From positions 139,256-203,255 of the forward strand of contig NIVC01000729.1 of assembly GCA_002269645.1 (NCBI GenBank): a stretch of 64,000 nucleotides of DNA. The letters run 5' to 3'. The notes under the pieces are model-generated. The model did not search any database, was not told the DNA's origin, and saw only the letters and a program-made list of their open reading frames with translations. Each line of letters starts with the position of its first letter. Positions within the stretch are counted from its first letter, which is position 1. The translations under genes and the position numbers were made by a program. Positions 5,647 through 64,000 of the stretch are shown here, one piece after another. The stretch is from Macrostomum lignano (Eukaryota).

Positions 5647-30513
<24,867 letters not shown>

Positions 30514-32073
30514 CGCTGCAGAAGGAGTTGAGGATGCATGCGTGAATTAATAATAATTTTTTCTTTCTGGGTTTGATGGGGGACAAAGTTTTTTTCACCC
30601 AAATTTCACTTAAACCGTTTCCTAGAACTATTATTAACCCCCAATATTACTGTTGTTTTGTGGTTTGGTCATAACTATATTTAACCTGCTCGTTTTGTAT
30701 TATTCCGAATTGTTAAATTGTCGTTTTAATTGGTCAGCTAATTAACAATTTAAACAACTTTTTCGAGAGAAAAACACTAATTTTATTGCTAGCCTACTTA
30801 CAGTAAAAAGCTATGAAAATTGCAGTAAAAAAACTAGCAGACTTTTAAAAACGGCAAAGAAATTCACGAGCGATTTTTTCGAAATCTACTGAATTACTCA
30901 ATCTATCTTATTTAATTTAAGACGTTTTTTCGCAGTTGTTGTGATTTACTAAACATTAAAATGATTTATTATTCGCCATATATTATTGCTGTTTCTGCCG
31001 CTACTCCTTTGTCTGCACTCTCATCGCACACAAACGCACTCGAGTGGAATCAAAAGCATATTTTTCTTAAGTTGTTTTTTTTCAAAAAATTCCAAGTTCT
31101 CATTGAGTCATCATTTTTCTATTTTAGTCATTATTGGTTATTCCGAATTTGATTGATTTTTTTCTATTGTTATTTCATTGAAAAAAATCAATTCACAATA
31201 TATAATTGAACCTTTCATTTCATTCATTCATCTTTATATATTCGTGAAACATAAATCTTAGTCTCAGTCTTATGTTTTTCATCTTGGTTAGCAGGAATCT
31301 TTTGGAGCATGAGCGGTAAAGTTCAAGTTTACTGCTGGCATGACCTGTGAGTCGTGACTGACCGCCATTTTATAACATTAATTATTATTTTAAGAACCAT
31401 TCCTATTCTTGAAAAATACACATTAAATTATAGAAACAGACATTGTTTGTTGTTTTAAAAAATATTAGACAACCTAGAAATGTTTTATTTTAATTACATC
31501 AATTATTGTATTTTAGGGCCTAGATAATACACTAATGTGGAATTAAAGCTGTTAGCGGTTTTATAGTGGTTTTGATTTTGTAGCGATTCGATTTTTATGG
31601 TCTCTCTAACTTTACGACTAATGTACATTTAGTCCTGTACATCTCTTCTCAGCCCAATATTCTCCGCTGGCAAGCCCAACTAGTTGTTAAATTGAGGAGG
31701 TGGGTTCTTTGCGTACATTCCCCGACCGTCGTCTTCTCGTCCTTTTCTTTATCATCGCCACCCCACCCCCCTCCCCCCTCTAGCCAGCCTGGCCTTTTTT
31801 CACACCCTCGCGCACCCCCCTCGTCGCCGCGTTCTCAATCTGCCTTCCACTCCGCTTTCTCTCTCGCCTCTCTCAGCGCTCACTGCCAGGGCCGAGGGTT
31901 AAGAGGAAAGCCAACCCCAGTTGTCATAACAACACTCTACCCGCCCGCCCCTTATATTTCTCTAAAGCGTCTTTCTGAGGCGCGCCAATTTAAACAGGCT
32001 ATTTTAGTTGGTATTTTTTTCCTGGTCTTAAAATTGAATTGAAATATACATACAGAAGTTGCTAAAAAGCCAA

Positions 32074-32718
32074 ATGACGGTAGAGAAACCGGAGGCCGAT
32101 GCGGCTGCGGAGGCAGCGGCCGCGCCCGTGGCAAAACTGCGCGTCAGCAATCCGAAAGAGGAGCTGCTCTGCCAGGCGGCCGAGGATGGCGATTGTAAAA
32201 CGATTGGCAAGCTGATCAGCGAAATTGAGAATGTTGAGCTCAAATGGCCCAGGCTAGAGAATGTAAACTGTTTGGACGCATTGGGTCGCACGGCGCTGAT
32301 GCGAGCTTCCCAAGCCGGTCACTACGAGGCCGTGAAACTGCTAGTTGCCAACGGAGCCGATGTGAATTATCGCGACTGGAACGGAGTCACCGCTCTGCAC
32401 TTGGCAGCCAAGCATCACCAATTGCAGGTGGTGAAGTTCCTCATCATGTCCGAGGCGAGGCTGGACGCGCTGACCCGAACCGGCCTGGCACCCATCGACT
32501 TGGCCAGGTACAACTCGGACACCTGGACAGTCCTTCGACAGGCAGCCACGGGCACCATGCCGACGGTGGACCATCTGGTGCAGACTATCGAGGTGCCCCT
32601 GGTGCCAGCCTACGCCATCCCGAAGCCGAAATCGGGCGACGGTAAGAAGAAAGGCAAGAAAGGCGGCAAGAAGAGCGGCAAGAAGGGCAAGAAGGGTGGA
32701 AAGAAGAAGAAGAAGTGA
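32074..32718 (+). CDS. Small ankyrin-repeat protein (about 3-4 repeats, 214 aa) with basic Lys/Gly C-terminal tail, intronless CDS
   Basis: Ankyrin consensus GRTALMRASQAGHYEAVKLLVANGADVN, GVTALHLAAKHHQLQVVKFLI, GLAPIDLA. First ATG at 32074 (the ORF track starts at an upstream TTG). Ends GKKKGKKGGKKSGKKGKKGGKKKKK*. Confidence 0.9.
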   Translation: MTVEKPEADAAAEAAAAPVAKLRVSNPKEELLCQAAEDGDCKTIGKLISEIENVELKWPRLENVNCLDALGRTALMRASQAGHYEAVKLLVANGADVNYRDWNGVTALHLAAKHHQLQVVKFLIMSEARLDALTRTGLAPIDLARYNSDTWTVLRQAATGTMPTVDHLVQTIEVPLVPAYAIPKPKSGDGKKKGKKGGKKSGKKGKKGGKKKKK

Positions 32719-40575: not shown

Positions 40576-41898
40576 ATGTCTTCATCAACGAACAGCGTCA
40601 CTCTGGTACACTCTGCTAGCCAGCTGGTCCAGGTGGTTGCCGACGGTCGAACTCGACTAAGAGGCTCGGAGATGCGCCATCCAGTGGTACATGGCGAGCC
40701 CGGAATAAATTACGCCCTGGCATTCGACATGGCCTCAGGTCGCATTGTCGACCTCGGCCCCACAGCGGCAGTTGAGACGCGCCTACAGGCCAGCGGCTGC
40801 ACCGTCCAGACCCGGGTTGACGCCACCGATTGCGTCATCATGCCGGGCTTCGTTGACGCGCACACGCACCCGATCTGGGCCGGCGACCGAGTGCACGAGT
40901 TCGCCATGAAACTGGCCGGCGCCACCTACATGGACATCCACGCGGCTGGCGGTGGAATCCACTTCACGGTGCGCGAAACCGCCCGGGCCACCGATCGGGA
41001 GCTGGCTGACCTGCTGAGCAGTCGCCTGGCTTCAATGAGTCGCCATGGCACCACCCTGGCCGAAGTGAAGTCCGGCTACGGCCTCACGCTCGATGCCGAG
41101 CTGCGGCTGCTGCAGCTGCTGTGCGACGCCGCTGCAGATCCGCTCTGCCCGGTGCGGCTCTCCGTCACCTACCTGGCCGGCCACGCCGTACCACCGGGTC
41201 GCGACTCTGCTGAGTTCGCAGCCGAGGTGGCCTCGGAGCACGTGCCCCGCGTCCTGGCTGAGCGGAAGATCTCTGGCCGACTGTCCGCTGTCCGACAGAT
41301 TGACGTCTTCTGCGAGCGCGGCGTGCTCAACGCAGCTGAGTCGGCTCGGATTCTCGAGGCTGCTCTGCCCGATCTGCGCGGCAACGTCCACGCGGATGAG
41401 CTCAGCGATCAGGACGGCGCGGCGATGGCTTGCCGGTCCGGCGCAGCGGCCGCCTCGCACCTGGAGTTCGTCTCTGTGTCCGGCATCTCAGCGATGGCCT
41501 CGAACGACTGCGGCCCCGTAGCGGTGCTGCTGCCGACCACGGCTCGCCTGTTGCACCTGCCGGCTCCGCCGGCTCGTCGGATGATCGACAGCGGCTGCGC
41601 TGTGGGCCTCGGCAGCGACTTCAACCCGAACGCGCACTGCCTGAGCATGCCGCTGATTGGCCACATGGCCTGCGTGGACTTCGGCCTCAGCATGGAGGAA
41701 GCCCTGGCCGCCTGCACAATCAACGGTGCAGCGGCGCTGGGCCTGTCGGACCAGACAGGCAGCCTGGAGGTTGGCAAACTGGCCGACTTTGTTCTGCTGC
41801 GGGCGCCCCGGTGGGAGCACGCGTTCTACCAGGTGGGCGACTCTGACAGTCTGGTGAAGCTGGTGTGCTGCGGCGGACGGTTGGTGAAGAAGGGCTGA
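40576..41898 (+). CDS. amdhd1: Imidazolonepropionase (histidine catabolism, amidohydrolase family), intronless, 440 aa
   Basis: MPGFVDAHTHPIWAGDRVHEFAMKLAGATYMDIHAAGGGIHFTV, EVKSGYGL, DVFCERG, HADEL, SHLE, LLPTT, LGSDFNPNA, TINGAAALG, GSLEVGKLAD: hallmark HutI/AMDHD1 motifs, with the animal-type FAMKLAGATYM segment. Confidence 0.96.
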   Translation: MSSSTNSVTLVHSASQLVQVVADGRTRLRGSEMRHPVVHGEPGINYALAFDMASGRIVDLGPTAAVETRLQASGCTVQTRVDATDCVIMPGFVDAHTHPIWAGDRVHEFAMKLAGATYMDIHAAGGGIHFTVRETARATDRELADLLSSRLASMSRHGTTLAEVKSGYGLTLDAELRLLQLLCDAAADPLCPVRLSVTYLAGHAVPPGRDSAEFAAEVASEHVPRVLAERKISGRLSAVRQIDVFCERGVLNAAESARILEAALPDLRGNVHADELSDQDGAAMACRSGAAAASHLEFVSVSGISAMASNDCGPVAVLLPTTARLLHLPAPPARRMIDSGCAVGLGSDFNPNAHCLSMPLIGHMACVDFGLSMEEALAACTINGAAALGLSDQTGSLEVGKLADFVLLRAPRWEHAFYQVGDSDSLVKLVCCGGRLVKKG

Positions 41899-53065: not shown

Positions 53066-53184
53066 GGGGGTTGGCCCTCAAGGGCGTTTGATTGCACGAG
53101 CAGAGCCAAGCCGAGATTTTAATTTAGCACTTGGAATCGAGCCTTGGCCACTGGCATATCAGAGCTACTTTGGGCTACGACGCC

Positions 53185-53378
53185 TTCTCCTGAATAGGGT
53201 TCTGCAATAGGCAACTTCGCTGGAGAAAATCCGCACTAGGAAATAATCCTTCTCCTGAATAGGGTTCTGCAATAGGCAACTTCGCTGGAGAAAATCCGCA
53301 CTAGGAAATAATCCTTCTCCTGAATAGGGTTCTGCAATAGGCAACTTCGGTGGAGAAAATCCGCACTAGGAAATAATG
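53185..53378. repeat. Triplicated 65-nt unit
   Basis: ttctcctgaatagggttctgcaataggcaacttcg... starts at 53185, 53250 and 53315. Confidence 0.93.
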
Positions 53379-53572
53379 CACTAAAGAGACACTAAAGAGA
53401 ATTTCCTTTGAGCTTTTCTATAGCTTTTCTATCTCTGGTAGAATATTGTGGGGTAAAATGACTTGTCTAACAATACATTTAGCAGCGAACGCCGGTCTTC
53501 AAAGCGAAATTGAATCGGCAATTGTAATTCAGTTAATTCAGCCGCAGTTGCTATGAAGTGCCTCGCGCGCGC

Positions 53573-54451
53573 TCAGCCACGCTGGTAGAGAGTCCAGTCG
53601 GTTCCGGTCAGGCTGGCTGGCGGGTAGACGAACGCCAGCAGGTGGCAGGCGAGCAGCCGCTGGGAGAAAACGGCGGCCTGGCAGTCGGCTCTGGCGCTGC
53701 ACTGGAGCAGGCAGTCGGCGTCAGACTGGGCAGCGGCGGGCCAGACGGAAGTCGATTCGGATTTCACCGGAGGGCTGGACTGTCGCACCACCGTGTAGGT
53801 GTTCCTGTCTGACACTGTTTAATTTGAAGTCAGACTTGTTTAGCATTTTGATAGTTCTGTGCCCAGCAACTGCCAACCCGCTATCTGATGATGTCATTGG
53901 TGTTTTTGATGCTAGACTTCATAAAATCTATTCCGTAAGTTGATATTGACATTTTGATGCTTCGTTGTTCCGTTGACATTTGAAATTTTGAGCTAGCTGT
54001 TGCTGAGCAATATTCAAGAGTTTCATAGAAAGTTGAGCAACTTACCGAGATAAGTCAGAGCAAAAACCGAGTTTCGCCGCGACCCACCGCAATTCTGCAG
54101 CGTATTTCCTGGACACGAGTAGTGGCAGTCGGTCTCGTTGGCTTTACCATAGGAACCGAAAGAGTTGCCGCAAAAGCACTGTCTGTAGTACTGCAGGCCG
54201 AAGTACGCAAAGCTGCCTAACGAGCAGATGCCGCTGCAGAACTCGTGCGTTGCCTCCCTACCGGTTTGCACGAAGCCGCCGGCAGCCACGCTAAATTGGC
54301 CGAACGTGCAGCTGGCGTTGAGACCGTTCAAATCTCTAGCACTGATTCTGTCCACATAGCAGCCCAGGTAAGAAAATTGAACGGATCTGCCAGCAACGTT
54401 AATGGTGAGAAGAGCGGCAAAGAAAATAAGTGGCGGTTTCGGGCGAACCAT
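53573..54451 (-). CDS. Secreted WSC + PAN/apple domain protein, copy A (213 aa)
   Basis: Exon 1 54451-54046: signal peptide MVRPKPPLIFFAALLTINVAG plus 8-Cys WSC (YLGCYVD...FCSGIC...YFGLQYYRQCFCG...DCHYSCPG...NCGG...NSVF). Phase-1 intron (gtaag...tcag). Exon 2 53808-53573: PAN motif C-x3-C-x5-C-x11-C, ends YQRG*. Confidence 0.88.
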
Positions 54452-55389
54452 ATCTCTGAACACTGGGTGATTTGGTGATTAGAAGGTATCTTAGGGAAGT
54501 TGACATGTGCAGCTCACAGTTTTTTTGGTCCTACGTTTGCTTCTTTGGATCCAATAGTATTGAGTCAATTTTTCACAATGGCAAAATTTCTTTCAACCAA
54601 TAGAGGTTTAAGAGAACTTTCTCATTGGCCATATTTGATACGAAGAAATTTACTTATGTAGTGAGCCAATAGATTAGCCTGCTAGGTGAATCGGTAGTTG
54701 AACTCAAATTCGTGCGAAAATCTGTTATAAGTGACGAAACGTAACTGGAAAACAACAAACAAACGACGAAGGAGGAGTTAAAATGAGTCTAATAACTTTA
54801 GTCACTTGGACAGTTTCCAACAGGTATATTTACAGCTAATAGTACTCAATACAATACATGATGTTGCCAAACACATAATTTTTATATACTCACATGTATA
54901 CCATAGAAATTCGAAATGCGACTCATCCCTTTTAAATATCTCGTCCAGGGCCCCCTAGTTCGATTGGATGATCAATGAGTACTGATCAAGGAGAGTTTGT
55001 TTGTTTGCTTTCGCTTGTTGAGCAGCTTCTTTTTGAGCATGCTAAGGTTCGAAGCCTTAAACTATGTGTCCGCTTTGTCCCTCTCATTGATTGTTCTCGG
55101 CTTTAAAAGTGAGTTTTTTTACCTATATATAACGTGAAATAATTCCTGTGACAGTTTTTCGCCATTTTCCGTGTCCATTTTCAAACGCAGTAAGAATGTT
55201 TCACAGGAGTTATTACCTAAAACTACTTCCGGTGAAGCTCCTCAGACTATAAGTACGGACTCCCATAGGCTTGTTTCCGTCAGGCGCTTAATCCGAGCAA
55301 CACCTTTCGTTCTGACTAAGCTTCCATTTGATCCACTGTTGATCTGCACACTTCTGAAAATTTCTGCTTAGAAACTAAAAAAACATTTG

Positions 55390-55953
55390 CTCCCAACGCC
55401 ATTGTCACCACTCGGATCAACCAGTGGGTGGCGTCAAAGCACAGGGAGAGGTAGACTAACGCGCCCGACTGCCGGCAATTCCGCGCGGCTTTTCCCTGTC
55501 CTTCATCTGCCATGCGCAAGGCCCTGCTTGGACTCAACCGCAGGGACATCAGGGTGGTGACCATGGCCCTCTCGGGTCATGGATGTTTTGCTAGGCATCG
55601 TTACCTCAAGGGGAAAATCCGTAGCGAGAAATTCCCCTTCTGCCTCTGCGGTGCCTCTCCGGTGAATGCGGAGCACTTAACCTGAGAATGCCCCGCCTTT
55701 ACTCAGGACAGGCTCACCTACCTCGGCCCAAACCCGGACCTCTCCGACGTTTTCAGGCCCGACAATCTCTGCCAGCTCGTCCGCTACCTAAGGGCTACCG
55801 GACGAGCGACTATTCATCTCCTGGACTCTCCGAAGGGGGACCGCGCTGCGGACACCGGCACCACCGGATCTCCCTGCGCGACACCGCAGCACCAGCTCCC
55901 CGTGGTCGCCAGGGGTTAGCGAAATGGACGGTAACGTCTCCTCGCTGCATCCG
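55390..55953 (+). mobile_element. Decayed 3' end of a non-LTR retrotransposon (LOA/R1/I-like, post-RNase H CCHC region)
   Basis: Translates with two in-frame stops as ...[25 protein letters not shown]...(C>F)PFC...NAEHLT*ECPAF...RLTYLG, the typical C-terminal zinc-knuckle region of these clades. Confidence 0.75.
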
Positions 55954-56470
55954 ATAACTGCACGATGTGCGAACTTCCACAGGCACAACAGACCTGAAGG
56001 AACTGGTGGCAGGGCCAAACTACATCCCAAGCTTCAGCTTAGAACGAACTCATAAACAGGACGTTGAGTTAGGCGCCGAGCAAGCTTATAATTAGCCTAG
56101 ATTTTAAAAAGACACTGCTAACTATGCGTAGTGCCTTAAATGCGAGCGTAAAATAACGAAAAACACAACATAAAAATTTCTTAAATTCATAAACTTTGAT
56201 TATATACCCACTTTCAGTGATCTTTGTTCTCATTATTAATCATCCGGATCGTTTGATAGCAGAGCAATGAACTGACTACTGACTAACAACGACCATTGCT
56301 ACTGTGACTGCTAAAGTAGTATGTGTTGATCATACTTCAAATAGGTTTCATTTTCAAGATCCTGTGATGCCATGCACTTAGTAACTCAGAGTTTATTTTA
56401 GCAAAATGATTGTCCAAAGTTAGTTCGAATGTCTAAAACTCCAGCTCAAAACTCTAACATGTCGAGGCCA

Positions 56471-57205
56471 TCAGGCGCGGGGGAAGAACTCCCCAGTCAC
56501 GTTCGCCAGAGATGGCGGCACTCCAGCGAACGGCAGCAGGTAGCACAGGCGCTGATGCTGCGAGAACACCACAGCCTGACATTCGTCGGTTGAGGTGCAC
56601 TCAATCAGGCAGGTGACCAGCTGCTCAGATTTGATGCTGCGGTAAGCTTGTCGGGGGAAAGAATCTCCGACAGTGAAGCTGGCGCGATCCACAGGGATGT
56701 TGAAGCTTTTCATTGCTGAAAATTGATAGGAGCCATGACTTTTGTGCAGTGTTCTGGTAGTATTTAAAAAAATAAAGAGTCACTCACACAAATACGTCTG
56801 AGAGTAGACAGAGTTTCGATTTCGACTGCCGCAGATCTCGCTTGGTTGACCGGCGCAGGTCATGTTGCATTCGGCTTGGTTGGCCGCTCCTTGGGAGCCG
56901 TACGACAGCCCGCAGTAGCACTCCTTGCCGTACTGCAGGCCGAAGTACGGGAAGCCGCCCAGAGAGCAGATGCGGCTGCACAGCTCCAGCGTCATGGACA
57001 TCAAGGAGACGCAGCCAATGGAGAGCATGGAGAACTCGGCCAGGCTCTGCACTCCCCGCAGTCCGTGAAGGTCCCTAGTATCGTTCGTCGCGTCCACGTA
57101 GCATCCGCGATACTCAAAACGGGCGAGTCTCCCAGTAGCGCCCAGAAGCAAGAGGCTCAGGAACAGTGCCACAAAGATCAGTTGCCAGTTTCTCAATGCC
57201 TTCAT
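56471..57205 (-). CDS. Secreted WSC + PAN/apple domain protein, copy B (220 aa)
   Basis: Exon 1 57205-56788 (MKALRNWQLIFVALFLSLLLLGATG + WSC), 72-nt phase-1 intron gtgagt...ttcag, exon 2 56715-56471 (TCLIECTSTDECQAVVFSQHQRLCYLL...FFPRA*). Confidence 0.9.
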
Positions 57206-58406
57206 GGTCTCCAGTGACAAGCAGCAGCGCTGAGTTTTGTGCTGTTTTTCCGGAAAAGCTTCTGTCAAATCAGCTCGGCTATGATCAAGCGAATTTATCC
57301 CCAAAAGCCGAATGAGTGAAGTGCAGGACACGGTAAACAATTCAAGCTAACTGGCTGAGTTTGTGAAAGGCGATGGATGGATAGAAAATTCCGATAATGA
57401 AAAGCAAATAGTTCCAATCAACTCAACCTGACGTATATGCTAATGAAAGACTGATTAAAATATCTGCTGTATATTTGTAGTTGAGAGGCCTAAAAGCCAG
57501 ACTTGTGCAACCCACTCTATCAGCTCGAATGCTTGCTTCACACGTGTGTCAATATTTCTAAGTTGCCGGGACCTGATGCTAATGAATATTGAGTGTGGCA
57601 GTCATCACATTTAACTGATGTGCTGAAATAAATAATGTTGTACGATCCCCGATTCGCCTAAAAGCAAATTTGAATGAAAGGTCGCTTGATTTGCAAGATT
57701 AGTATAAAATGGACCTCGAGTATTCAGACTTTGAAGTCGCCGATGGGACACAGAGAAGCATGTCCCACCCCAGTAAATGCTGTGGGAGACATGCCATCAC
57801 TTTATTGACCGAAAACAACCTCTTAAACTTACACAGCCTAATGGAAATCTAACAACATTTTAGCACGGGGAGCCAAAAGCATCAAAGAAGTATTGAACGC
57901 TGTAGCAATCTGGCCTATAATGTATGATGCGGCAGCGGTAGGCCGGACTGAAGTTCTTCAAGGCGTCACTGAAGTCACTCAACAATCGGACTGCTTCACC
58001 GCTATGAGGGTGCTTCTGTATGAGACTGTTTTTTACCTGTAGTGGTGAGGTTCAATAGGTCATTCATTGTAGTTACTGTAGTTAGTTGACTTTACATGTG
58101 TATTTAAGCCAAAGGTCAACTTGGTCAAAACGCGTCAGTTACTTGATCTATATCAGTTGTCGGATTTTATTTGTAGTATCAAAAGAATACACGTTTAAGT
58201 GAGTTTTAGAGACATCATGACGCTGTAAAATGTAGCTGGGATTATACGGATATGGTTGCACATGCTAGATTGCGTGAGAAAGTACTCTGAAACTCGCCTA
58301 TCTATTCTGTGTACCCTCGTAAATGAAGAGATTGGATGCATGACACTAAACGTTTCGCATTAAAGACAAACAAATGGATTTGACCTGGGTGACGTCTGAG
58401 GATTCT

Positions 58407-58690
58407 TTGACTTGACTTAATTGAGTCAGCTGCAGGGGGTTCCGGGCATCCGGATGCAGCGAGGAGGCGCTGCCGCACATTCCGCTTACCCCTGGCGACC
58501 ACGGGCAGCTGGTGCTGCGGTGTCGCGCAGGGAGATCCGGTAGTGCCGGTGTTCGCAGCGCGGTCCTCCTCCGGCGAGTCCAAGAAGTGGATTGTCACTC
58601 GCCCGGTAGCCCTTAGGTAGCGGACTAGCTGGCAGAAGAGGTTCGGGTTTGGGCCGAGGTAGGTGAGCGTGTCTTCGGTGAATGCGCCGC
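58407..58690 (-). mobile_element. Second 5'-truncated copy of the same LINE 3' end with (AAGTC)-type tail
   Basis: Reverse complement aligns to about 55700-55953 (ctcacctacctcggcccaaacccg...gcgcgacaccgcagcaccagct...ctcgctgcatccg) and ends cctgcagctgactcaattaagtcaagtcaa. Confidence 0.8.
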
Positions 58691-58804
58691 TGTGAACTCT
58701 AACCTAAACCATAATCCTAATCGTAGAGTTACATCTACGAGCGTATAGACAAGTGCATAATTATATCGGGTTACTCATGAAAAGTGATCTGTAAATGGGT
58801 CGCC

Positions 58805-59002
58805 ATCATAAACCGAAATATCACTAACCCGAAATATCACTAACCCGAAATATCGCAAACTCGAAATATAACTCCAAAATTACTAGCAGGGCCCATCACA
58901 AACCCAAAATACCATAACTCTGAAAACCAAAATAGTATTGGGCATTGCTTGAACTTTCGGAGTTATGATATTTCGGGTTTGTGATATTTAGAGTTTATGA
59001 TG
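58805..59002. repeat. Small inverted-repeat element with internal AACCCGAAATATCACT repeats
   Basis: catcataaaccgaaatatcac...tataactcc at left; ggagttatgatatttcgggtttgtgatatt...tttatgatg at right. Confidence 0.55.
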
Positions 59003-61003
59003 TGCGTTGCTATTTGTTTTTGCTATTAGTTATTAGTTAGTTGCTATTAGTTAATAATATTTTGGGTTTATGATGAAAAGCGCTTTTCGGAGTTGTAAAT
59101 TTTCAACAACAACTCCCCCTGGAGTTGTAAATCACAGGGGGGTTTGTGATGCCCCTGTAAAATATGACTGTTGTAGTCATCGTATGTCCTTGAAATTTAA
59201 GCAAAAAGAACCCATGAGTACGTGAACAATTGCTTCTTTTGCATCTCTAAGACAAGTTTTGTGCGGAAGCAGTGGAAATTTGTCTATGGGTATTTGTCTT
59301 TATGCAATTGTCTATGGAAATTTGTCCATGGGTATTTATTTGTCCATAGGCCTTTGTCTATGAGTATTTGTCTGTAGGCAATTGTCTATGGAAATTTGTC
59401 AATAGGTGATGTTCATGTTACTGTGGCTTTTCCTCTTTGCGCCTACCAAAACTGAGCACAAAATTGAACAAATGAAATGAAGGCAGTCAGACAGGTAAAT
59501 ATACTCATTCAACTTGGTCCATCAAGGCTCCATTTTCATCACTAAAAATTACATTACCTATAGTAGTCTAAACAAGAAATGGTTTTCTAAAAATAAAAAA
59601 AATAAAAAATAAAAAAGTAAAATCAAAATATTTTACTACTCCACAGACCAGGGAGTTCTTCCATTGACTCAGCTATTTATCTGTAGCTGCAGTCTATCGA
59701 GTCAAGTAAGTGAATCGATTGAGGCGGCAATCAATGAAATGGGATTTTCTCTTTTTTCCAATTTCAAATTTCAAGGTCTTCCCACTTTCAGCTCAGCTCC
59801 TGACGTCTGTCTCTGAGACAGCAAAAACCTCTGAACTTCGGTGACTGTCGTGCGAGACAGGTTGGTCGTGCGATTCACACCAACGATAGGAAGGTCGGGG
59901 CCGCTTGTACACCTTGTGTGAGCGTGAGTATGAGTGCGTGTCTGCGTACAGTATTGATGCGTTTGTAAGCGCTCAGGAGACAGCGGAATGAGCAGAATTG
60001 TCGTCAGAGCAGCTTGCGGGACAATGTCTCCGAAGGCGCTGCGCCAGAATGTCCACGGCTATCCTGCAAATGTTTTTTAGCTGCAGCTTGCTTCGAGAAA
60101 CAGAATTTTCGAGCTACTCTTTGACAACCTATTTAAACAAAGGTTAGTTGACAAACTGCAAAGAGGTGATGCTTTTGATGCTTAAGTCTCACGATCTTAA
60201 GAAGGCTGCTCACTGCTGATTACACTCCGGAAACTGATTGACAGCAGAAAACTCTAAAGCACTACTTCACAATTCAAAGCAATTCTCAATTCCAGAGTCA
60301 AGTATCCATGTTACTAGATTATTGTTATAAAATAATTCAATTGAGCATTTCTCAATTGATTCGAATTAAAAGCTGAATTGAGTGAAATCGATTACCTAAC
60401 TGACGTTCGAATTTAACAGCAGTGAAATTATTGTTTCGAGGCATGGACTCCTAGATTCTCCTAGGTGCTTAAATATAGTCCTCCATGTTCTAGGGCGCAC
60501 TTGTTGAACCCGGCTTTCGGAGGAACAAAAAATTCCTAGTGAAATTAAATGGGCCGGTGTTTCGTCTGTCAGGCTGGAAGAAAAACAACCACCGGGGCCA
60601 GGGACCAACCACACTAATTAACTGGAATTGACCTCTACTTACACCCCTAAGCATATCTTATGCAGTTAGAAAATTGGTCAATATTTAATTTTTGAAAAAT
60701 CCCAACGTAGATGGGCACAGGCAAACAAAACAGCACACTGGAAAGTCCACCGGTTAATTAATTAACAATTATTTTAGGTAAAATATGCAGAAACTGACTC
60801 TGTAGAAGCTTTGGATCCAACAAACGCCGTTTTACTTAAATATGCACTGATCAAACACAGAACGCCAAAAAGCATTTTCCACCTGACTCTTGTCGAGTGG
60901 TGTGTTTCCGTATTGGTTGGTGAAAAACTCAAGCAAGCTGAAAGGGACTAGTGGCGCTTTGGAATGTTAGATTGATCGAAAACGAGACTGTTTCAAAGCG
61001 AGC

Positions 61004-61721
61004 TCAGCCGCGCTCAAAGAAGTCTCCATCGGTGCTGCTCAGACTGGCAGGCGGGTAGGCGAATCTCAGCAAGTGGCACAGGCGCTGCTGGCCAGAGTAA
61101 ATCACAGCCTGGCAGTCAGCTGAGGCCTCGCACAGCCCCATGCACTCGACGTCGGATCGGGTAGCGCTGGTCCAATAAGTGCTCTGGGTGGACTCCACCG
61201 TCTGGTTGGGCCTCTGCGACGGCTCAAAATACTTACTATCTACAAAATGTACATAAGATTTTACAAAATTGGCCGAACTTTGGTTTGAAAAGCCCAACAA
61301 AATGTCGTAATGAAGAAGGCAGACTCACTTGGATAGGTCAAAGCAAACACAGAGTTGCGCCACGTGCCACCGCATTTAGAAGCTCCGTTTCCAGCGCAGA
61401 CGCGGTTGCAGTCGCTCTCGCTAGCAGCTCCAGAGATCCGTAGGAGGTGCCGCAGAAGCACTCTCTACCGATTTGCACACCGAAGTACGGGAAGCCGCCC
61501 AGAGAGCAGAGGCTGCTGCAGAGCTCGTGCGTCATATTAGCACTGCTCAGCATGAGGCGGCCGGTGTTGAAATGCCCGATTCTGCTTACTCCGGTGAGTC
61601 CTCTCAGGTCTCGGCCTCCGTTGTCCACAAAGCAGCCAATGTAGGACACCTGAGTTACCCTACGGGCAGCACAAAGCACTGGGACGGCGAGACCCACAAT
61701 GCAGACGATTGTTTTGAGCAT
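61004..61721 (-). pseudogene. WSC + PAN/apple gene copy C with a 1-nt deletion frameshift at about 61432 (pseudogene or sequencing error)
   Basis: Exon 1 61721-61329, 89-nt phase-1 intron, exon 2 61239-61004. Spliced length is 629 nt, one short of a multiple of 3. WSC reads ...CFCGTSYGS in one frame and GAASESDCNRVCAG...KCGG in another. Confidence 0.8.
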
Positions 61722-61799
61722 AGTTACTTGGGTAGATGGGATTTCAGTTCTCCTGTTGCTCATAGGAGCGTAGGAAGAGATGAAAACTGCAGTGCTTGC

Positions 61800-61806
61800 T
61801 TTTATA
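61800..61806 (-). promoter_or_regulatory. Candidate TATA box (TATAAAA) of WSC-PAN copy C
   Basis: ttttata on + strand, about 80 nt upstream of the copy C ATG. Confidence 0.35.
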
Positions 61807-62039
61807 CCGATTTTTAAAAATGATCTGGTTGGATAAAAACCAGTGCACTAATGAGCGCAATGCATTAGTTCCAGTAGCTTATGTAGCTTCTAAGAGTAAT
61901 TTTAACTTTACTTGATGATATTTTCTGAGCAGCCAGCTGCTCCCAGACTCTAATTTAGATGCCAGCAAATAAAAAACAATTCTCATTTAATGTTTGCTTT
62001 CTCGAAATGCTTATTCAAGAAACCAACTCCCACTGTAAA

Positions 62040-62992
62040 GACCCTGTTGCTAAAGTCCCTGTTGCTAAAGACCCTGTTGCTAAAGCCCCTGGTACTAAAG
62101 ATCCCGACGCTAAAGCCCCGTTGCTAAAGATCCTGACGCTAAAGCCCCTTTTGCTAAAAACCCTGGCGCTGAAGCCCCTGTTTCTAAAGACCCTGGCGCT
62201 AAAGCCCCTGTTGTTAAGACCTGGCGCTAAAGCCCCTGTTGCTAAAGACCCTGACGCTAAAGCCCCTGGTACTAAAGATCCTGACGCTAAAGCCCCGTTG
62301 ATAAAGATCCTGGCGCTAAAGCCACTGTTGCCAAAGATCCTGGCGCTAAAACCCCGTTGCCAAAGATCCTGGCGCTAAAGCCCCTTCTGCTAAAGACCCT
62401 GGCGCTAAAGCCCCTGTTTCTAAAGACCCTGGCGCTAAAGCCCCTGTTGCTAAAGACTCTGGCGCCAAAGCCCCATTGATAAAGATCCTGGCGCTAAAGC
62501 CCCTGTTGCCAAAGATCCTGGCGCTAAAACCCTGTTGCTAAAGATCCTGGCGCTAAAGCCCCTGTTTCTAAAGACCCTGACGCTAAAGCCCCTGGTACTA
62601 AAGAACCTGGCGCTAAAGCCCCTGTTTCTAAAGATCCTGGCGCTAAAGCCCCTGTTGCCAAAGATCCTGGCGCTAAAACCCTGTTGCTAAAGATCCTGGC
62701 GCTAAAGCCCCTGTTTCTAAAGACCCTGGCGCTAAAGCCCCTGGTACTAAAGAACCTGGCGCTAAAGCCCCTGTTTCTAAAGACCCTGGCGCTAAAGCCC
62801 CTGTTTCTAAAGACCCTGGCGCTAAAGCCCCTGTTTCTAAAGACCCTGGCGCTAAAGCCCCTGTTTCTAAATACCCTGACGCTAAAGCCCCTGTTGCTAA
62901 GGTCCCTGGCACTAAAGCCCCTGTTGCTAAGGTCCCTGGCGCTAAAGCCCCTGTTGCTAAAGACCTAGGTGCTAAAGCCCCTGTTGCTGAGG
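62040..62992. repeat. 30-nt (2 x 15) minisatellite (ggcgctaaagcccctgtttctaaagaccct)
   Basis: Direct inspection. Confidence 0.95.
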
Positions 62993-63211
62993 CATTTTTG
63001 AATTAATCCAATAATTTTTCGATCGGGTACGCCAGAAGTTCGGCTCTGCTCACGGTACGGGCAATAAGTTACTAAGTAAACATAATTTACGTCAGCTTCT
63101 AGTTGTCCACGGGCTTGGCTATCTTGAAAAGAAAAGAGTCGAAGGTCAGCGGCGGAATGAACACCCAGTCAGGGAGATAGATATATTTACGTCAATTCAA
63201 ACTTAATTACG

Positions 63212-63250
<39 letters not shown>
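63212..63250. repeat. (GATT)n microsatellite
   Basis: Direct inspection. Confidence 0.9.
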
Positions 63251-63252
<2 letters not shown>

Positions 63253-63817
63253 AACAAAGGCCGGGTAAAAAAGTATCTTAGCTTACTATGGTGCAAGTCA
63301 ACCACTTTGTACTGAGCACTGTCAATAAGACTTCAATTCCGGATCACCCATTGAACATAATGCGTAGCTCGCAGGCTACCATTTTCTTGATTTCTTCAAG
63401 TGCAAGTCAGGGGCAGCGAGTAATAATAACGATAGAAAGTTAGAGTGCTACTTTACACTAACAAAACCACGGCAGGACGAAGAGAGGGCCCGTCAGAGGG
63501 TAATAACAGAGGAGAAAACAAAAATGACAGCAAACGATATCGAGACACGTTCAAGTCTCAACGTCAGCCAAAACCGACTCACAACATATGCAACTGACCA
63601 GTTAAGTATGTAGAAAAATGATAGAGCTGCCTAAAAGGCACTAGATTAGTCAGAATGCTATCTACTAAGATTTTCATATTTCGCCAATACATTGAATCAT
63701 GTCTTAGATTTCTCAATCAAAAAAGGTGAAAATATTATTTTCCAGAATTCAATTTTTCAAGGATTGACAGTACTTGCATCATCTGCTGCCATCCAGTTTC
63801 CATGCAGTGTCCCGCGT

Positions 63818-64000
63818 TTAGCCACGCTGGTAGAGAGTCCAGTCGGGTCCGGTCAGGCTGGCTGGTGGGTAAGCGAACGCCAGCAGGTGGCAGGCGAGCA
63901 GCCGCTTGGAGAAAACGGCGGCCTGGCAGTCGGCTCTGGCGCTGCACTGGAGCAGGCAGTCAGCGTCAGAATGGGCAGCGGTGGGCCAGACAGATGTCTT
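63818..64000 (-). CDS. WSC + PAN family copy D, exon 2 (PAN domain), truncated by window edge
   Basis: Near-identical to copy A exon 2: ...SVWPTAAHSDADCLLQCSARADCQAAVFSKRLLACHLLAFAYPPASLTGPDWTLYQRG* (TAA at 63820-63818). Confidence 0.85.
   Translation of the reverse strand, partial: KTSVWPTAAHSDADCLLQCSARADCQAAVFSKRLLACHLLAFAYPPASLTGPDWTLYQRG

Follow-up and report, generated by a model that had tools for sequence, protein, structure and literature searches.

Among the closest described systems to the genes reported here are the WSC-type prostate transcripts of Macrostomum lignano. Approximately 27 of 76 prostate-limited transcripts in this species have WSC-type proteins as their best hits (PMC5977470 Table S1; Weber et al. 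2018). RNA815_80.4 carries two WSC domains, and a prostate staining was lost upon its knock-down (PMC4490696; Arbore et al. 2015). The WSCD2-like Mlig-pro46 influences sperm competitiveness (PMC6953679; Patlar et al. 2019), and knock-down of Mlig-pro63 (RNA815_39357), for which the best hit bears the description "WSC domain-containing 2", alters the suck behavior of the partner (bioRxiv 10.1101/734301). These Mlig-pro transcripts (PMC5977470, PMC4490696, PMC6953679) resemble the genes studied here in coming from the same genus, in being small with WSC best hits, in belonging in many cases to multi-copy tandem gene sets such as Mlig024181.g1-g10, and in showing little conservation beyond the genus. 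However, a PAN/apple tail has never been reported for them.

Several other systems share individual features with this locus. The Kremen1/2 ectodomain (Kringle-WSC-CUB), in which the WSC domain participates in protein contacts, and yeast Wsc1 have the same WSC fold and eight-cysteine pattern, but they serve as receptors or sensors in the membrane and have a transmembrane helix alongside other domains, whereas the proteins described below are predicted to be soluble and to have an apple-like partner domain. Sarcocystis SML-2, Toxoplasma MIC4, and the N (PAN) domain of HGF/plasminogen share a four-cysteine core (C-x3-C...C...C) and a beta-sheet-plus-helix fold. Fungal copper radical oxidases (9n3u, 6stx/6ryv) bear N-terminal WSC or PAN modules, which we take to be accessory binding domains; to our knowledge, they never carry both together, and unlike the proteins described here, which lack an enzyme, their modules are joined to a catalytic domain. 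Conopeptide-type gene superfamilies reportedly have region-specific synonymous rates, with one segment frozen even at silent sites and a functional "business end" that is hyperdivergent among paralogues.

In the window, that is, the whole 64-kb stretch of DNA analyzed, we found four tandem paralogues (A to D), all on the minus strand, which bears out the positions of the four or more co-oriented genes proposed by an earlier sequence-only reading. No copies beyond these four were detected in the window by tblastn, and the E-values of the paralogue matches (1e-16 to 1e-35) indicate that they are not due to chance. Exon 1 of gene A (54046..54451) begins with a start codon at 54451, encodes a signal peptide (approximately residues 1-21) and a WSC domain with eight conserved cysteines, and is followed by a phase-1 GT donor, GTAAGT (54045-54040). 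After a 231-nt phase-1 GT..AG intron (53815..54045), exon 2 (53573..53814) encodes a linker, a four-cysteine PAN/apple-like domain, and the family tail, ending in a TGA stop codon (53575-53573). The reading frame is intact and the product has 215 residues. Gene B, also intact with a product of 220 residues, consists of exon 1 (56788..57205; signal peptide and WSC domain), a phase-1 GT-AG intron (56716-56787), and exon 2 (56471..56715), which encodes a divergent PAN-like module and a tail ending in CYLLPFAGVPPSLANVTGEFFPRA before the stop codon.

Gene C has the same organization, with a signal peptide and WSC domain in exon 1 (61329..61721), a phase-1 intron (61240-61328), and a PAN-like module in exon 2 (61004..61239) that ends in CHLLRFAYPPASLSSTDGDFFERG before the stop codon. 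Exon 1 contains a 1-nt deletion: the spliced length of 629 nt equals 2 modulo 3, leaving an orphan dinucleotide (61433-61432) and a frameshift in the gene as assembled. The window reads TCTCT-GGAG at this site, versus TCTCTCGGAA in the closest M. lignano paralogue. Either C became a pseudogene recently or the assembly has an indel at this site; the gene may be dead. The common plan previously read for A, B, and C therefore holds as an architecture, but not as an open frame in C as assembled. Gene D, as had been noted, is visible by exon 2 alone: the 3′ part (63818..64000) carries an A-type tail and a TAA stop codon, and its last 60 codons share 90% identity with A, the remainder lying past the window edge. 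The spacers of the cluster are occupied by transposon-derived fragments and satellites. Elsewhere in the window, hutI (imidazolonepropionase, histidine utilisation) shares 99% protein identity with the M. lignano copy, and syntenic DNA shows 97.7% nucleotide identity to M. lignano, so that the window derives from this species or from a sibling.

We examined the predicted domains using profiles and a structural model. The Pfam WSC profile (PF01822) scored 49.5, 58.0, and 54.6 bits for A, B, and C, each well above the gathering threshold of 27.8 bits and in agreement with the original assignment, and it matched all 15 family members. The WSC cysteines (C31, C72, C76, C92, C94, C109, C113, and C121 in A numbering) are invariant in the 15 sequences, and exon 1 of A and of B each contains one extra, non-conserved cysteine. 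An AlphaFold model built from 20 input sequences (overall pLDDT 79) reached a pLDDT of 81-93 over residues 21-130, the WSC part. In Foldseek, the best matches to the exon-1 part were Kremen (E = 5.7e-7) and the cysteine-rich domain of yeast Wsc1 (7pz2; TM 0.76-0.79), supporting a predicted WSC fold in exon 1.

For exon 2, the evidence consists of items that are weak one by one. The gathering threshold of Pfam PAN_1 (PF00024), 21.4 bits, was exceeded by A (23.5) and by C (26.1), while B (20.0) stayed below it, so that the proposed PAN assignment held at this cutoff for A and C only; the match spans approximately 43 of the 76 profile positions (positions 12-58). At E ≤ 0.1, 14 of the 15 members were matched, the best at 9.8e-7. 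The cysteine pattern read from the sequence, C170-x3-C174-x5-C180-x11-C192 in A numbering, is invariant across the 15 members and aligns, by profile alignment, with the cysteine core of SML-2, MIC4, and the HGF N domain. Against PDB chains, the exon-2 profile matched PAN/apple domains alone, namely SML-2 (E = 0.0035), the HGF N domain, and MIC4; a match of the same type lay in a fungal copper oxidase, over residues 42-72 of an entry whose deposited name is Kelch domain-containing protein. The model of residues 160-215 (pLDDT ~80) has the order beta-beta-beta-alpha-beta-beta-beta. After the WSC matches, nearly all Foldseek matches contained PAN/apple domains (FXI, prekallikrein, HGF, plasminogen, MIC4, and SML-2), and the rest were AMA1, which is akin to PAN. 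SML-2 was superposed with an rmsd of 1.8 Å over 56 columns at a probability of 1.0, with PAN-part E-values of just 0.01-0.07. SML-2, MIC4, and HGF/plasminogen N were thus the best matches by both profile and structure, and both module types of the fungal oxidases were also structural matches. Together, these results support a PAN/apple-like domain in exon 2. The likeness to the apicomplexan and HGF apple domains is limited to the core, however: the C-terminal part is a family-specific tail, LL.F.YPP.SL...D....RG, and each protein has one apple-like domain, fused to WSC. Within this tail, the previously noted motif LL.F..P..L is present and invariant or nearly so in the 15 members.

Signal peptides were predicted from an N-terminal hydrophobic core followed by small -3/-1 residues, with putative cleavage sites VAG|R (A), ATG|R (B), and CAA|R (C). 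By hydropathy (KD19 threshold ≥1.6), no segment of transmembrane strength follows the signal peptide, and the C-terminus is hydrophilic, without a hydrophobic tail. The position of the stop codon is conserved between copies while the codon itself varies (TGA, TAA, or TAG), and the sequence past it is unalignable; the retained stop position indicates that exon 2 is not spliced onward to a receptor. Both results agree with the earlier view that the proteins lack a transmembrane or GPI tail. Pfam detected no domains besides WSC and PAN, including no Kringle and no CUB. We also considered a Kremen-type receptor identity, which was rejected on this domain content and the missing transmembrane segment. 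The genes are thus predicted to encode secreted, disulfide-rich proteins of approximately 190-220 residues, with a WSC head, a PAN/apple-like tail, and no membrane anchor. Their predicted signal peptide and lack of an anchor are shared with the Mlig-pro candidates.

To place these genes in a wider context, we surveyed protein collections and the literature. At least 42 database proteins carry this module, all of them from M. lignano, and further tandem arrays occur in that species, with four copies at one locus (L001) and three at another (L002). No full-length relatives outside Macrostomum were found in collections of 5.8 billion and 1.84 billion proteins, indicating a large family restricted to Macrostomum in the databases searched. 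The sequence-only reading had proposed the family as a candidate undescribed system and knew of no described animal family with its minimal architecture. Our literature search found no paper describing a WSC-PAN family, although automatic annotation already labels the 42 or more proteins "WSC domain-containing protein" or "Apple domain-containing protein". Full-length relatives in the collections searched are confined to Macrostomum, but unrelated metagenomic proteins (P0178, P0361, and P0384) combine WSC with PAN as well.

Comparison of the paralogues revealed a marked contrast between the two ends of the coding sequence. Among A-type paralogues, the last ~170 nt (~57 codons) are 93-99% identical with a dS of 0-0.10, whereas synonymous sites in the WSC exon have reached saturation (dS 1.0-2.4). 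In gene A, this block (53573..53744) shows 93-95% nucleotide identity to M. lignano paralogues (dS 0-0.09), while exon 1 of those same paralogues is just ~60-70% identical to that of A. Third positions differ at 46-67 of ~110 sites in exon 1 but at 0-4 of 46 tail sites (Fisher p = 1e-5 to 8e-14), and GC3 is 0.85-0.87 in the tail versus 0.65-0.70 in exon 1. The linker of A clusters with the M. lignano paralogues L2b and L2c, and its tail with L1a and L5a. Similarly, L1c and L1d have exon 2 and the 3′ flank in common, yet their exon-1 dS is 1.2. These comparisons show mosaic evolution of the family, in which WSC heads and linkers diverged anciently and the tail has been kept near-identical within a subfamily.

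This contrast is compatible with segmental gene conversion, which is indicated by the GC3 enrichment together with the recombinant linker/tail combinations. GC-biased conversion between paralogues, along with purifying selection on the tail, may homogenize this segment. Like conopeptide-type superfamilies, these genes pair a segment frozen at silent sites with a hyperdivergent one, but the polarity is reversed, with the C-terminal module frozen, and the protein folds differ; the GC3 enrichment points to gene conversion rather than a targeted mutator. In every copy, the near-identical block finishes no more than a few nucleotides from the stop codon, a sharp edge that random conversion tracts alone would not predict. 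Such an edge, combined with synonymous sites frozen at dS 0-0.1, could instead mean that the ~170-nt tail is kept by a nucleic-acid function, such as a small-RNA target, an mRNA localization or translation element, or an overlapping frame. Long open frames do exist in an alternative sense frame (53538-53702, minus strand) and in antisense (53558-53812, plus strand), with a counterpart at 63735-63947 (minus strand), but they diverge past the main stop codon, and stop-free frames are expected anyway in GC-rich, codon-biased DNA. The block also shows no RNA-structure signal (z = +0.62 versus shuffles) and no Rfam match, and the GC3 and recombination patterns favor conversion, so we regard this explanation as improbable. 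Still less credible is the view that the array consists of non-functional duplicates in decay. The frameshift in C and the transposon-derived and satellite content of the spacers would fit decay, yet A and B have unbroken frames, retain each of the 12 conserved cysteines, and use canonical splice sites; the stop codon keeps its place between copies, and dN/dS is below 1 wherever dS is unsaturated (0.39 for C vs L2a; 0.64 for L2b vs L2c).

Regarding function, the best overall explanation, which we favor by a modest degree, is that this is a secreted WSC and apple family of Macrostomum, mosaic by conversion, whose members would act as lectin-like adaptors, with the prostate as the likeliest source. 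The prostate as source tissue, with the proteins passed to the mating partner in seminal fluid, is our leading guess, although a tentative one to which we give somewhat less than even weight; it is made because about a third of the prostate-limited transcripts of M. lignano match WSC-type proteins. Of the four settings named in the sequence-only reading (mucus, innate defence, adhesion, and mating secretions), it is mating secretions that the literature thereby backs indirectly. None of the 18 RNAi-tested prostate transcripts corresponds to the WSC-PAN subfamily: the M. lignano homologues (Mlig003751, 032201, 025595, 005479, 003588, 021789, 015848, and 025784) are absent from this set, and its primers match neither L001 nor L002. 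This comparison, based on published primers and gene identifiers, covered 18 among the 76 transcripts limited to the prostate. The "effector system" role and glycan recognition suggested previously are putative and purely inferential. As soluble lectin-like adaptors, the proteins could bind diverse glycan (or protein) targets through the variable WSC head, while the invariant apple-like tail might dock to one common partner or self-associate. A more specific and rather doubtful version is that of "variable head, constant tail" seminal lectins, in which sexual conflict or changing glycan targets would drive dozens of WSC heads apart, and one tail, held identical in dispersed paralogues by GC-biased conversion, would dock all of them to a single conserved partner, for example the sperm surface, an antrum receptor in the partner, or a secretory-granule sorting receptor.

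The sequence itself favors no tissue over another. Two other settings were weighed. The proteins might be mucosal or innate-immune lectins from gland cells of the epidermis, rhabdites, pharynx, or gut that bind microbial glycans (such as beta-glucan or chitin), in which case the diversified WSC heads would be pattern recognizers. Some members of both domain types bind carbohydrates: WSC or PAN modules occur in fungal copper radical oxidases (9n3u, 6stx), and SML-2 and MIC4, two apple lectins of apicomplexans, match closely in structure. Moreover, immune lectins typically show big tandem expansions that are specific to a lineage and have divergent binding domains. The crystal of SML-2 contains a galactose analogue (entry 2yip). 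Nevertheless, the prostate is the sole tissue to which publications on M. lignano assign small WSC proteins, and we consider an immune role unlikely. More unlikely again are structural or matrix proteins of antrum cement or shell glands, or of the duo-gland adhesive organs. Secreted, cysteine-rich, lectin-like modules would suit such a role, and Macrostomum tail organs express abundant lineage-specific secreted proteins (PMC4490696). However, the proteins described here are short, consist of two globular domains, and lack both repeats and low-complexity stretches, and literature searches gave no tie to published adhesive proteins.

Among hermaphrodites, M. lignano is the main model for the study of sexual selection and of the function of seminal fluid, and WSC-type proteins form the biggest recognizable class of its prostate transcripts, with a domain logic that was previously undescribed. 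The present analysis defines a WSC and apple subfamily with 42 or more members, arranged in tandem arrays and with sharply mosaic evolution. New here is the contrast between saturated WSC exons and near-identical tails, a clean natural case of segment-restricted concerted evolution within a coding exon. Because the tail is near-identical, probes, dsRNA, and short reads covering it are expected to cross-react among many paralogues, whereas exon-1 sequence would allow paralogue-specific detection. If the "variable head, constant tail" reading is true, the identical 170-nt tail would let one dsRNA silence an entire subfamily.

Between 53.5 and 64 kb of the window we identified four genes, all co-oriented on the minus strand. 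Gene A (exon 1, 54451..54046; exon 2, 53814..53573) contains a 231-nt phase-1 GT..AG intron and encodes an intact protein of 215 aa, and gene B (exon 1, 57205..56788; exon 2, 56715..56471) contains a 72-nt phase-1 intron and encodes an intact protein of 220 aa. Gene C (exon 1, 61721..61329; exon 2, 61239..61004) has an 89-nt phase-1 intron and a spliced length of 629 nt, and the last 60 codons of gene D (63818..64000) lie within the window. The paralogues matched one another with tblastn E-values of 1e-16 to 1e-35, and tblastn revealed no further family copies in the 64-kb window. The sequence-only reading had placed the four genes correctly, together with the phase-1 intron between exons 1 and 2 of A, B and C, but had missed a 1-nt frameshift in gene C. 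The frame of its exon 1 breaks at an orphan dinucleotide (61433-61432, minus strand) that corresponds to a 1-nt deletion: the window reads TCTCT-GGAG where its nearest M. lignano paralogue has TCTCTCGGAA or, in a shorter view of the same short CT repeat, TCTCT-GG against TCTCTCGG. Because of this break, gene C must either have become a pseudogene recently or contain an assembly indel within the repeat.

The WSC domain encoded by exon 1 exceeded the Pfam cutoff of 27.8 bits in A (49.5), B (58.0) and C (54.6), as had been predicted, and its eight cysteines were invariant across 15 family members. For the exon-2 module, the Pfam PAN_1 profile, matched over approximately 43 of its 76 positions, scored above the cutoff of 21.4 bits in A (23.5) and C (26.1) and below it in B (20.0), so that membership by Pfam's own criterion is borderline. 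PAN_1 was nevertheless detected at E<=0.1 in 14 of the 15 members, with a best E-value of 9.8e-7. An exon-2 profile searched against all PDB sequences matched PAN/apple domains only, namely those of Sarcocystis SML-2 (E 0.0035), the HGF N domain, Toxoplasma MIC4 and residues 42-72 of a fungal copper oxidase. An AlphaFold model from an 8-sequence alignment (pLDDT 48, with exon 2 below 35) was set aside for one from a 20-sequence alignment, which reached a pLDDT of 79, and about 80 over the exon-2 domain, and has the strand-helix order of apple domains. In Foldseek, the WSC part of this model matched Kremen, yeast Wsc1 and Fusarium glyoxal oxidase (E 5.7e-7 to 1.1e-5). Nearly all of the next-ranked matches contain PAN/apple domains, with AMA1 entries in addition, at E-values of only 0.01-0.07; SML-2 superposed on the model with an rmsd of 1.8 Å over 56 columns and a probability of 1.0. 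On the PAN_1, PDB-profile and AlphaFold/Foldseek matches, we accepted the module as a predicted divergent member of the PAN/apple domains, remodelled at its C-terminus, and the original WSC plus PAN/apple call was right.

Hydropathy indicated a signal-like core at the N-terminus and a hydrophilic C-terminus, and no segment of transmembrane strength followed the N-terminal core, in agreement with the earlier expectation. The aligned stop position is the same in every paralogue, although the codon varies (TGA, TAA or TAG), and past it the paralogue sequences become unalignable at once. Given this common stop and the unalignable sequence beyond it, exon 2 appears to end there and is not predicted to splice onward to a transmembrane receptor, the outcome that had been named as fatal to the soluble-protein proposal.

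Relatives were sought by single-sequence, profile and exhaustive HMM searches of protein databases, and full-length ones were recovered from M. lignano only. At least 42 M. lignano proteins carry the C-terminal cysteine/LL.F motif, under the automatic names "WSC domain-containing protein" or "Apple domain-containing protein", and they fall into subfamilies that each have their own tail type (A-type, C-type, "MQTLSIL" type and others). The highest identity of any database protein was 61% to A, 41% to B and 59% to C. All other listed matches cover the WSC half only, and a few metagenomic proteins (P0178, P0361 and P0384) join WSC to a PAN-like module in other arrangements, so the domain pair by itself is not unique. 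The proposal of an undescribed architecture therefore held in part: as judged from these searches, the family is confined to one flatworm genus and uncharacterised, yet already in databases. Long multi-unit matches, among them P0001 (330 aa), appear to be fused models of neighbouring copies; a polyprotein was rejected because the second unit of P0001 keeps its own signal peptide. The same fusion is the probable explanation for P0139 (2673 aa) and P0141 (1074 aa). Tandem arrays also occur elsewhere in M. lignano, with four copies at locus L001 and three at L002. The second L001 copy (6545-7235) has an exon 1 split across frames and a truncated exon 2, and is likely a pseudogene in an otherwise intact array.

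The relationship of the window to these loci was judged from its flanking genes. A single-exon hutI (imidazolonepropionase) gene at 40576-41898 (+) encodes 440 aa with 99% protein identity to BOX15_Mlig034260g1, and between about 28 and 52 kb the window is collinear with NIVC01000217.1 and NIVC01000622.1, on which the order of VPS13 exons, an ankyrin-repeat gene (32059-32718) and hutI is kept. These two contigs share 99.7% identity, and each is 97.7% identical to the window, in a comparison that reaches approximately 52 kb, short of genes A-D. From the hutI identity, the collinearity and the 97.7% value, the window is either another haplotype or homeologue of M. lignano or a sibling species. 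Since hutI places the window there, we treated comparisons with L001 and L002 as comparisons between paralogues and rejected a between-species reading. Elsewhere in the window, a 601-aa open frame at 25948-27753 (+) lies in a stretch of 59% GC. Long tandem arrays of short units are unusually abundant (3.4-9.8, 18.0-20.4, 33.5-35.8, 38.4-39.3, 42.2-43.9, 45.9-47.3 and 50.7-51.6 kb); they generate spurious long ORFs in all frames, and their lengths vary between the window and the two contigs.

Within the cluster, ten upstream regions shared no promoter motif, containing only generic TATA-like and CCAAT-like strings. Two spacers hold transposon-derived fragments, at 55512-55957 (+) and 58302-58598 (-), with a peptide in common, and the M. 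lignano gene model P0012 joins the same transposon-like element to a family member. A 65-nt unit repeated three times at 99% identity (53183-53377) starts about 200 nt downstream of the gene A stop codon, and between C and D a 30-nt satellite unit is repeated 32 times with 88% matches (62036-62988), with several frames open.

The C-terminal motif described earlier is present in all copies as part of the tail, the last part of exon 2; beyond that description, the tail proved nearly identical at the nucleotide level among A-type copies, while their WSC heads are saturated at synonymous sites. In the A-type set (window A and D; L001 a, c and d; L005 a), dS was 1.0-2.4 and dN 0.28-0.50 across the WSC exon; dS was 0.18-1.2 in the linker, and the final 46 codons had dS of 0-0.10 and dN of 0.01-0.07. 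The tail differed at 0-4 of 46 third positions, compared with 46-67 of about 110 in exon 1 (Fisher p 1e-5 to 8e-14). In nucleotide alignments the near-invariant block begins some 170 nt upstream of the stop codon and ends at it (window 53573-53744 and 63818-63989; L001 2819-2993, 10737-10910 and 15272-15445). Paralogues are 92-95% identical over this block, yet they are saturated at silent sites in exon 1 and cannot be aligned in the intron or 3' UTR.

Several features point to homogenisation of the tail by segmental, GC-biased gene conversion, and not to protein-level constraint alone. GC3 is 0.85-0.87 in the tail versus 0.65-0.70 in exon 1; the linker of gene A is nearest L2b and L2c, and its tail is nearest L1a and L5a; and L1c and L1d have exon 2 and the 3' flank in common with an exon 1 dS of 1.2. 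RNA structure is not supported as a cause of the block: its z was +0.62, and Rfam and tRNA searches of 52-64 kb returned no match. Retention of the block as a small-RNA target or an overlapping reading frame is possible but found no support. Long open frames, in an alternative sense frame and in antisense orientation, do cross the tail block (53538-53702 (-), 53558-53812 (+) and 63735-63947 (-)), and its antisense translation also forms the start of the M. lignano gene model P0014; these frames probably result from the GC-rich codon bias. With gene conversion as the favoured process, the abrupt end of the block at the stop suggests that the homology open to conversion would be limited by selection on the tail.

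The only published tissue context for WSC proteins in Macrostomum is the prostate. RNA815_80.4 encodes two WSC domains, and a prostate staining depends on it (PMC4490696); WSCD2-like Mlig-pro46 influences sperm competitiveness (PMC6953679), and knock-down of Mlig-pro63 alters suck behaviour in the partner (10.1101/734301). Many prostate-limited WSC-type transcripts map to multi-copy gene sets, and these proteins form a known class adjoining the WSC-PAN family. The WSC-PAN subfamily includes none of the 18 transcripts for which primers or gene identifiers have been published; primers of the 18 RNAi targets matched nothing in L001 or L002, and a full-text literature search returned no mention of eight Mlig gene identifiers of the family. 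"Plasminogen [C. gigas]" matches in Weber's table (PMC5977470 Table S1) were rejected as a PAN signal; they look WSC-type because the same oyster entry is also among the matches of a WSC transcript. A seminal-fluid role may be proposed tentatively for the family, a mucosal or immune lectin role seems rather unlikely, and a role in other glandular secretions would be improbable.

The WSC and PAN/apple folds both include members that bind carbohydrate and members that bind protein. For the A-D family of putatively secreted two-domain proteins, a soluble lectin-like adaptor would be the simplest model, in which a variable WSC head is joined to a constant apple-like tail and the tail would bind one common partner. 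The mosaic divergence of head and tail, absent from the sequence-only reading, is the most interesting property of the family.
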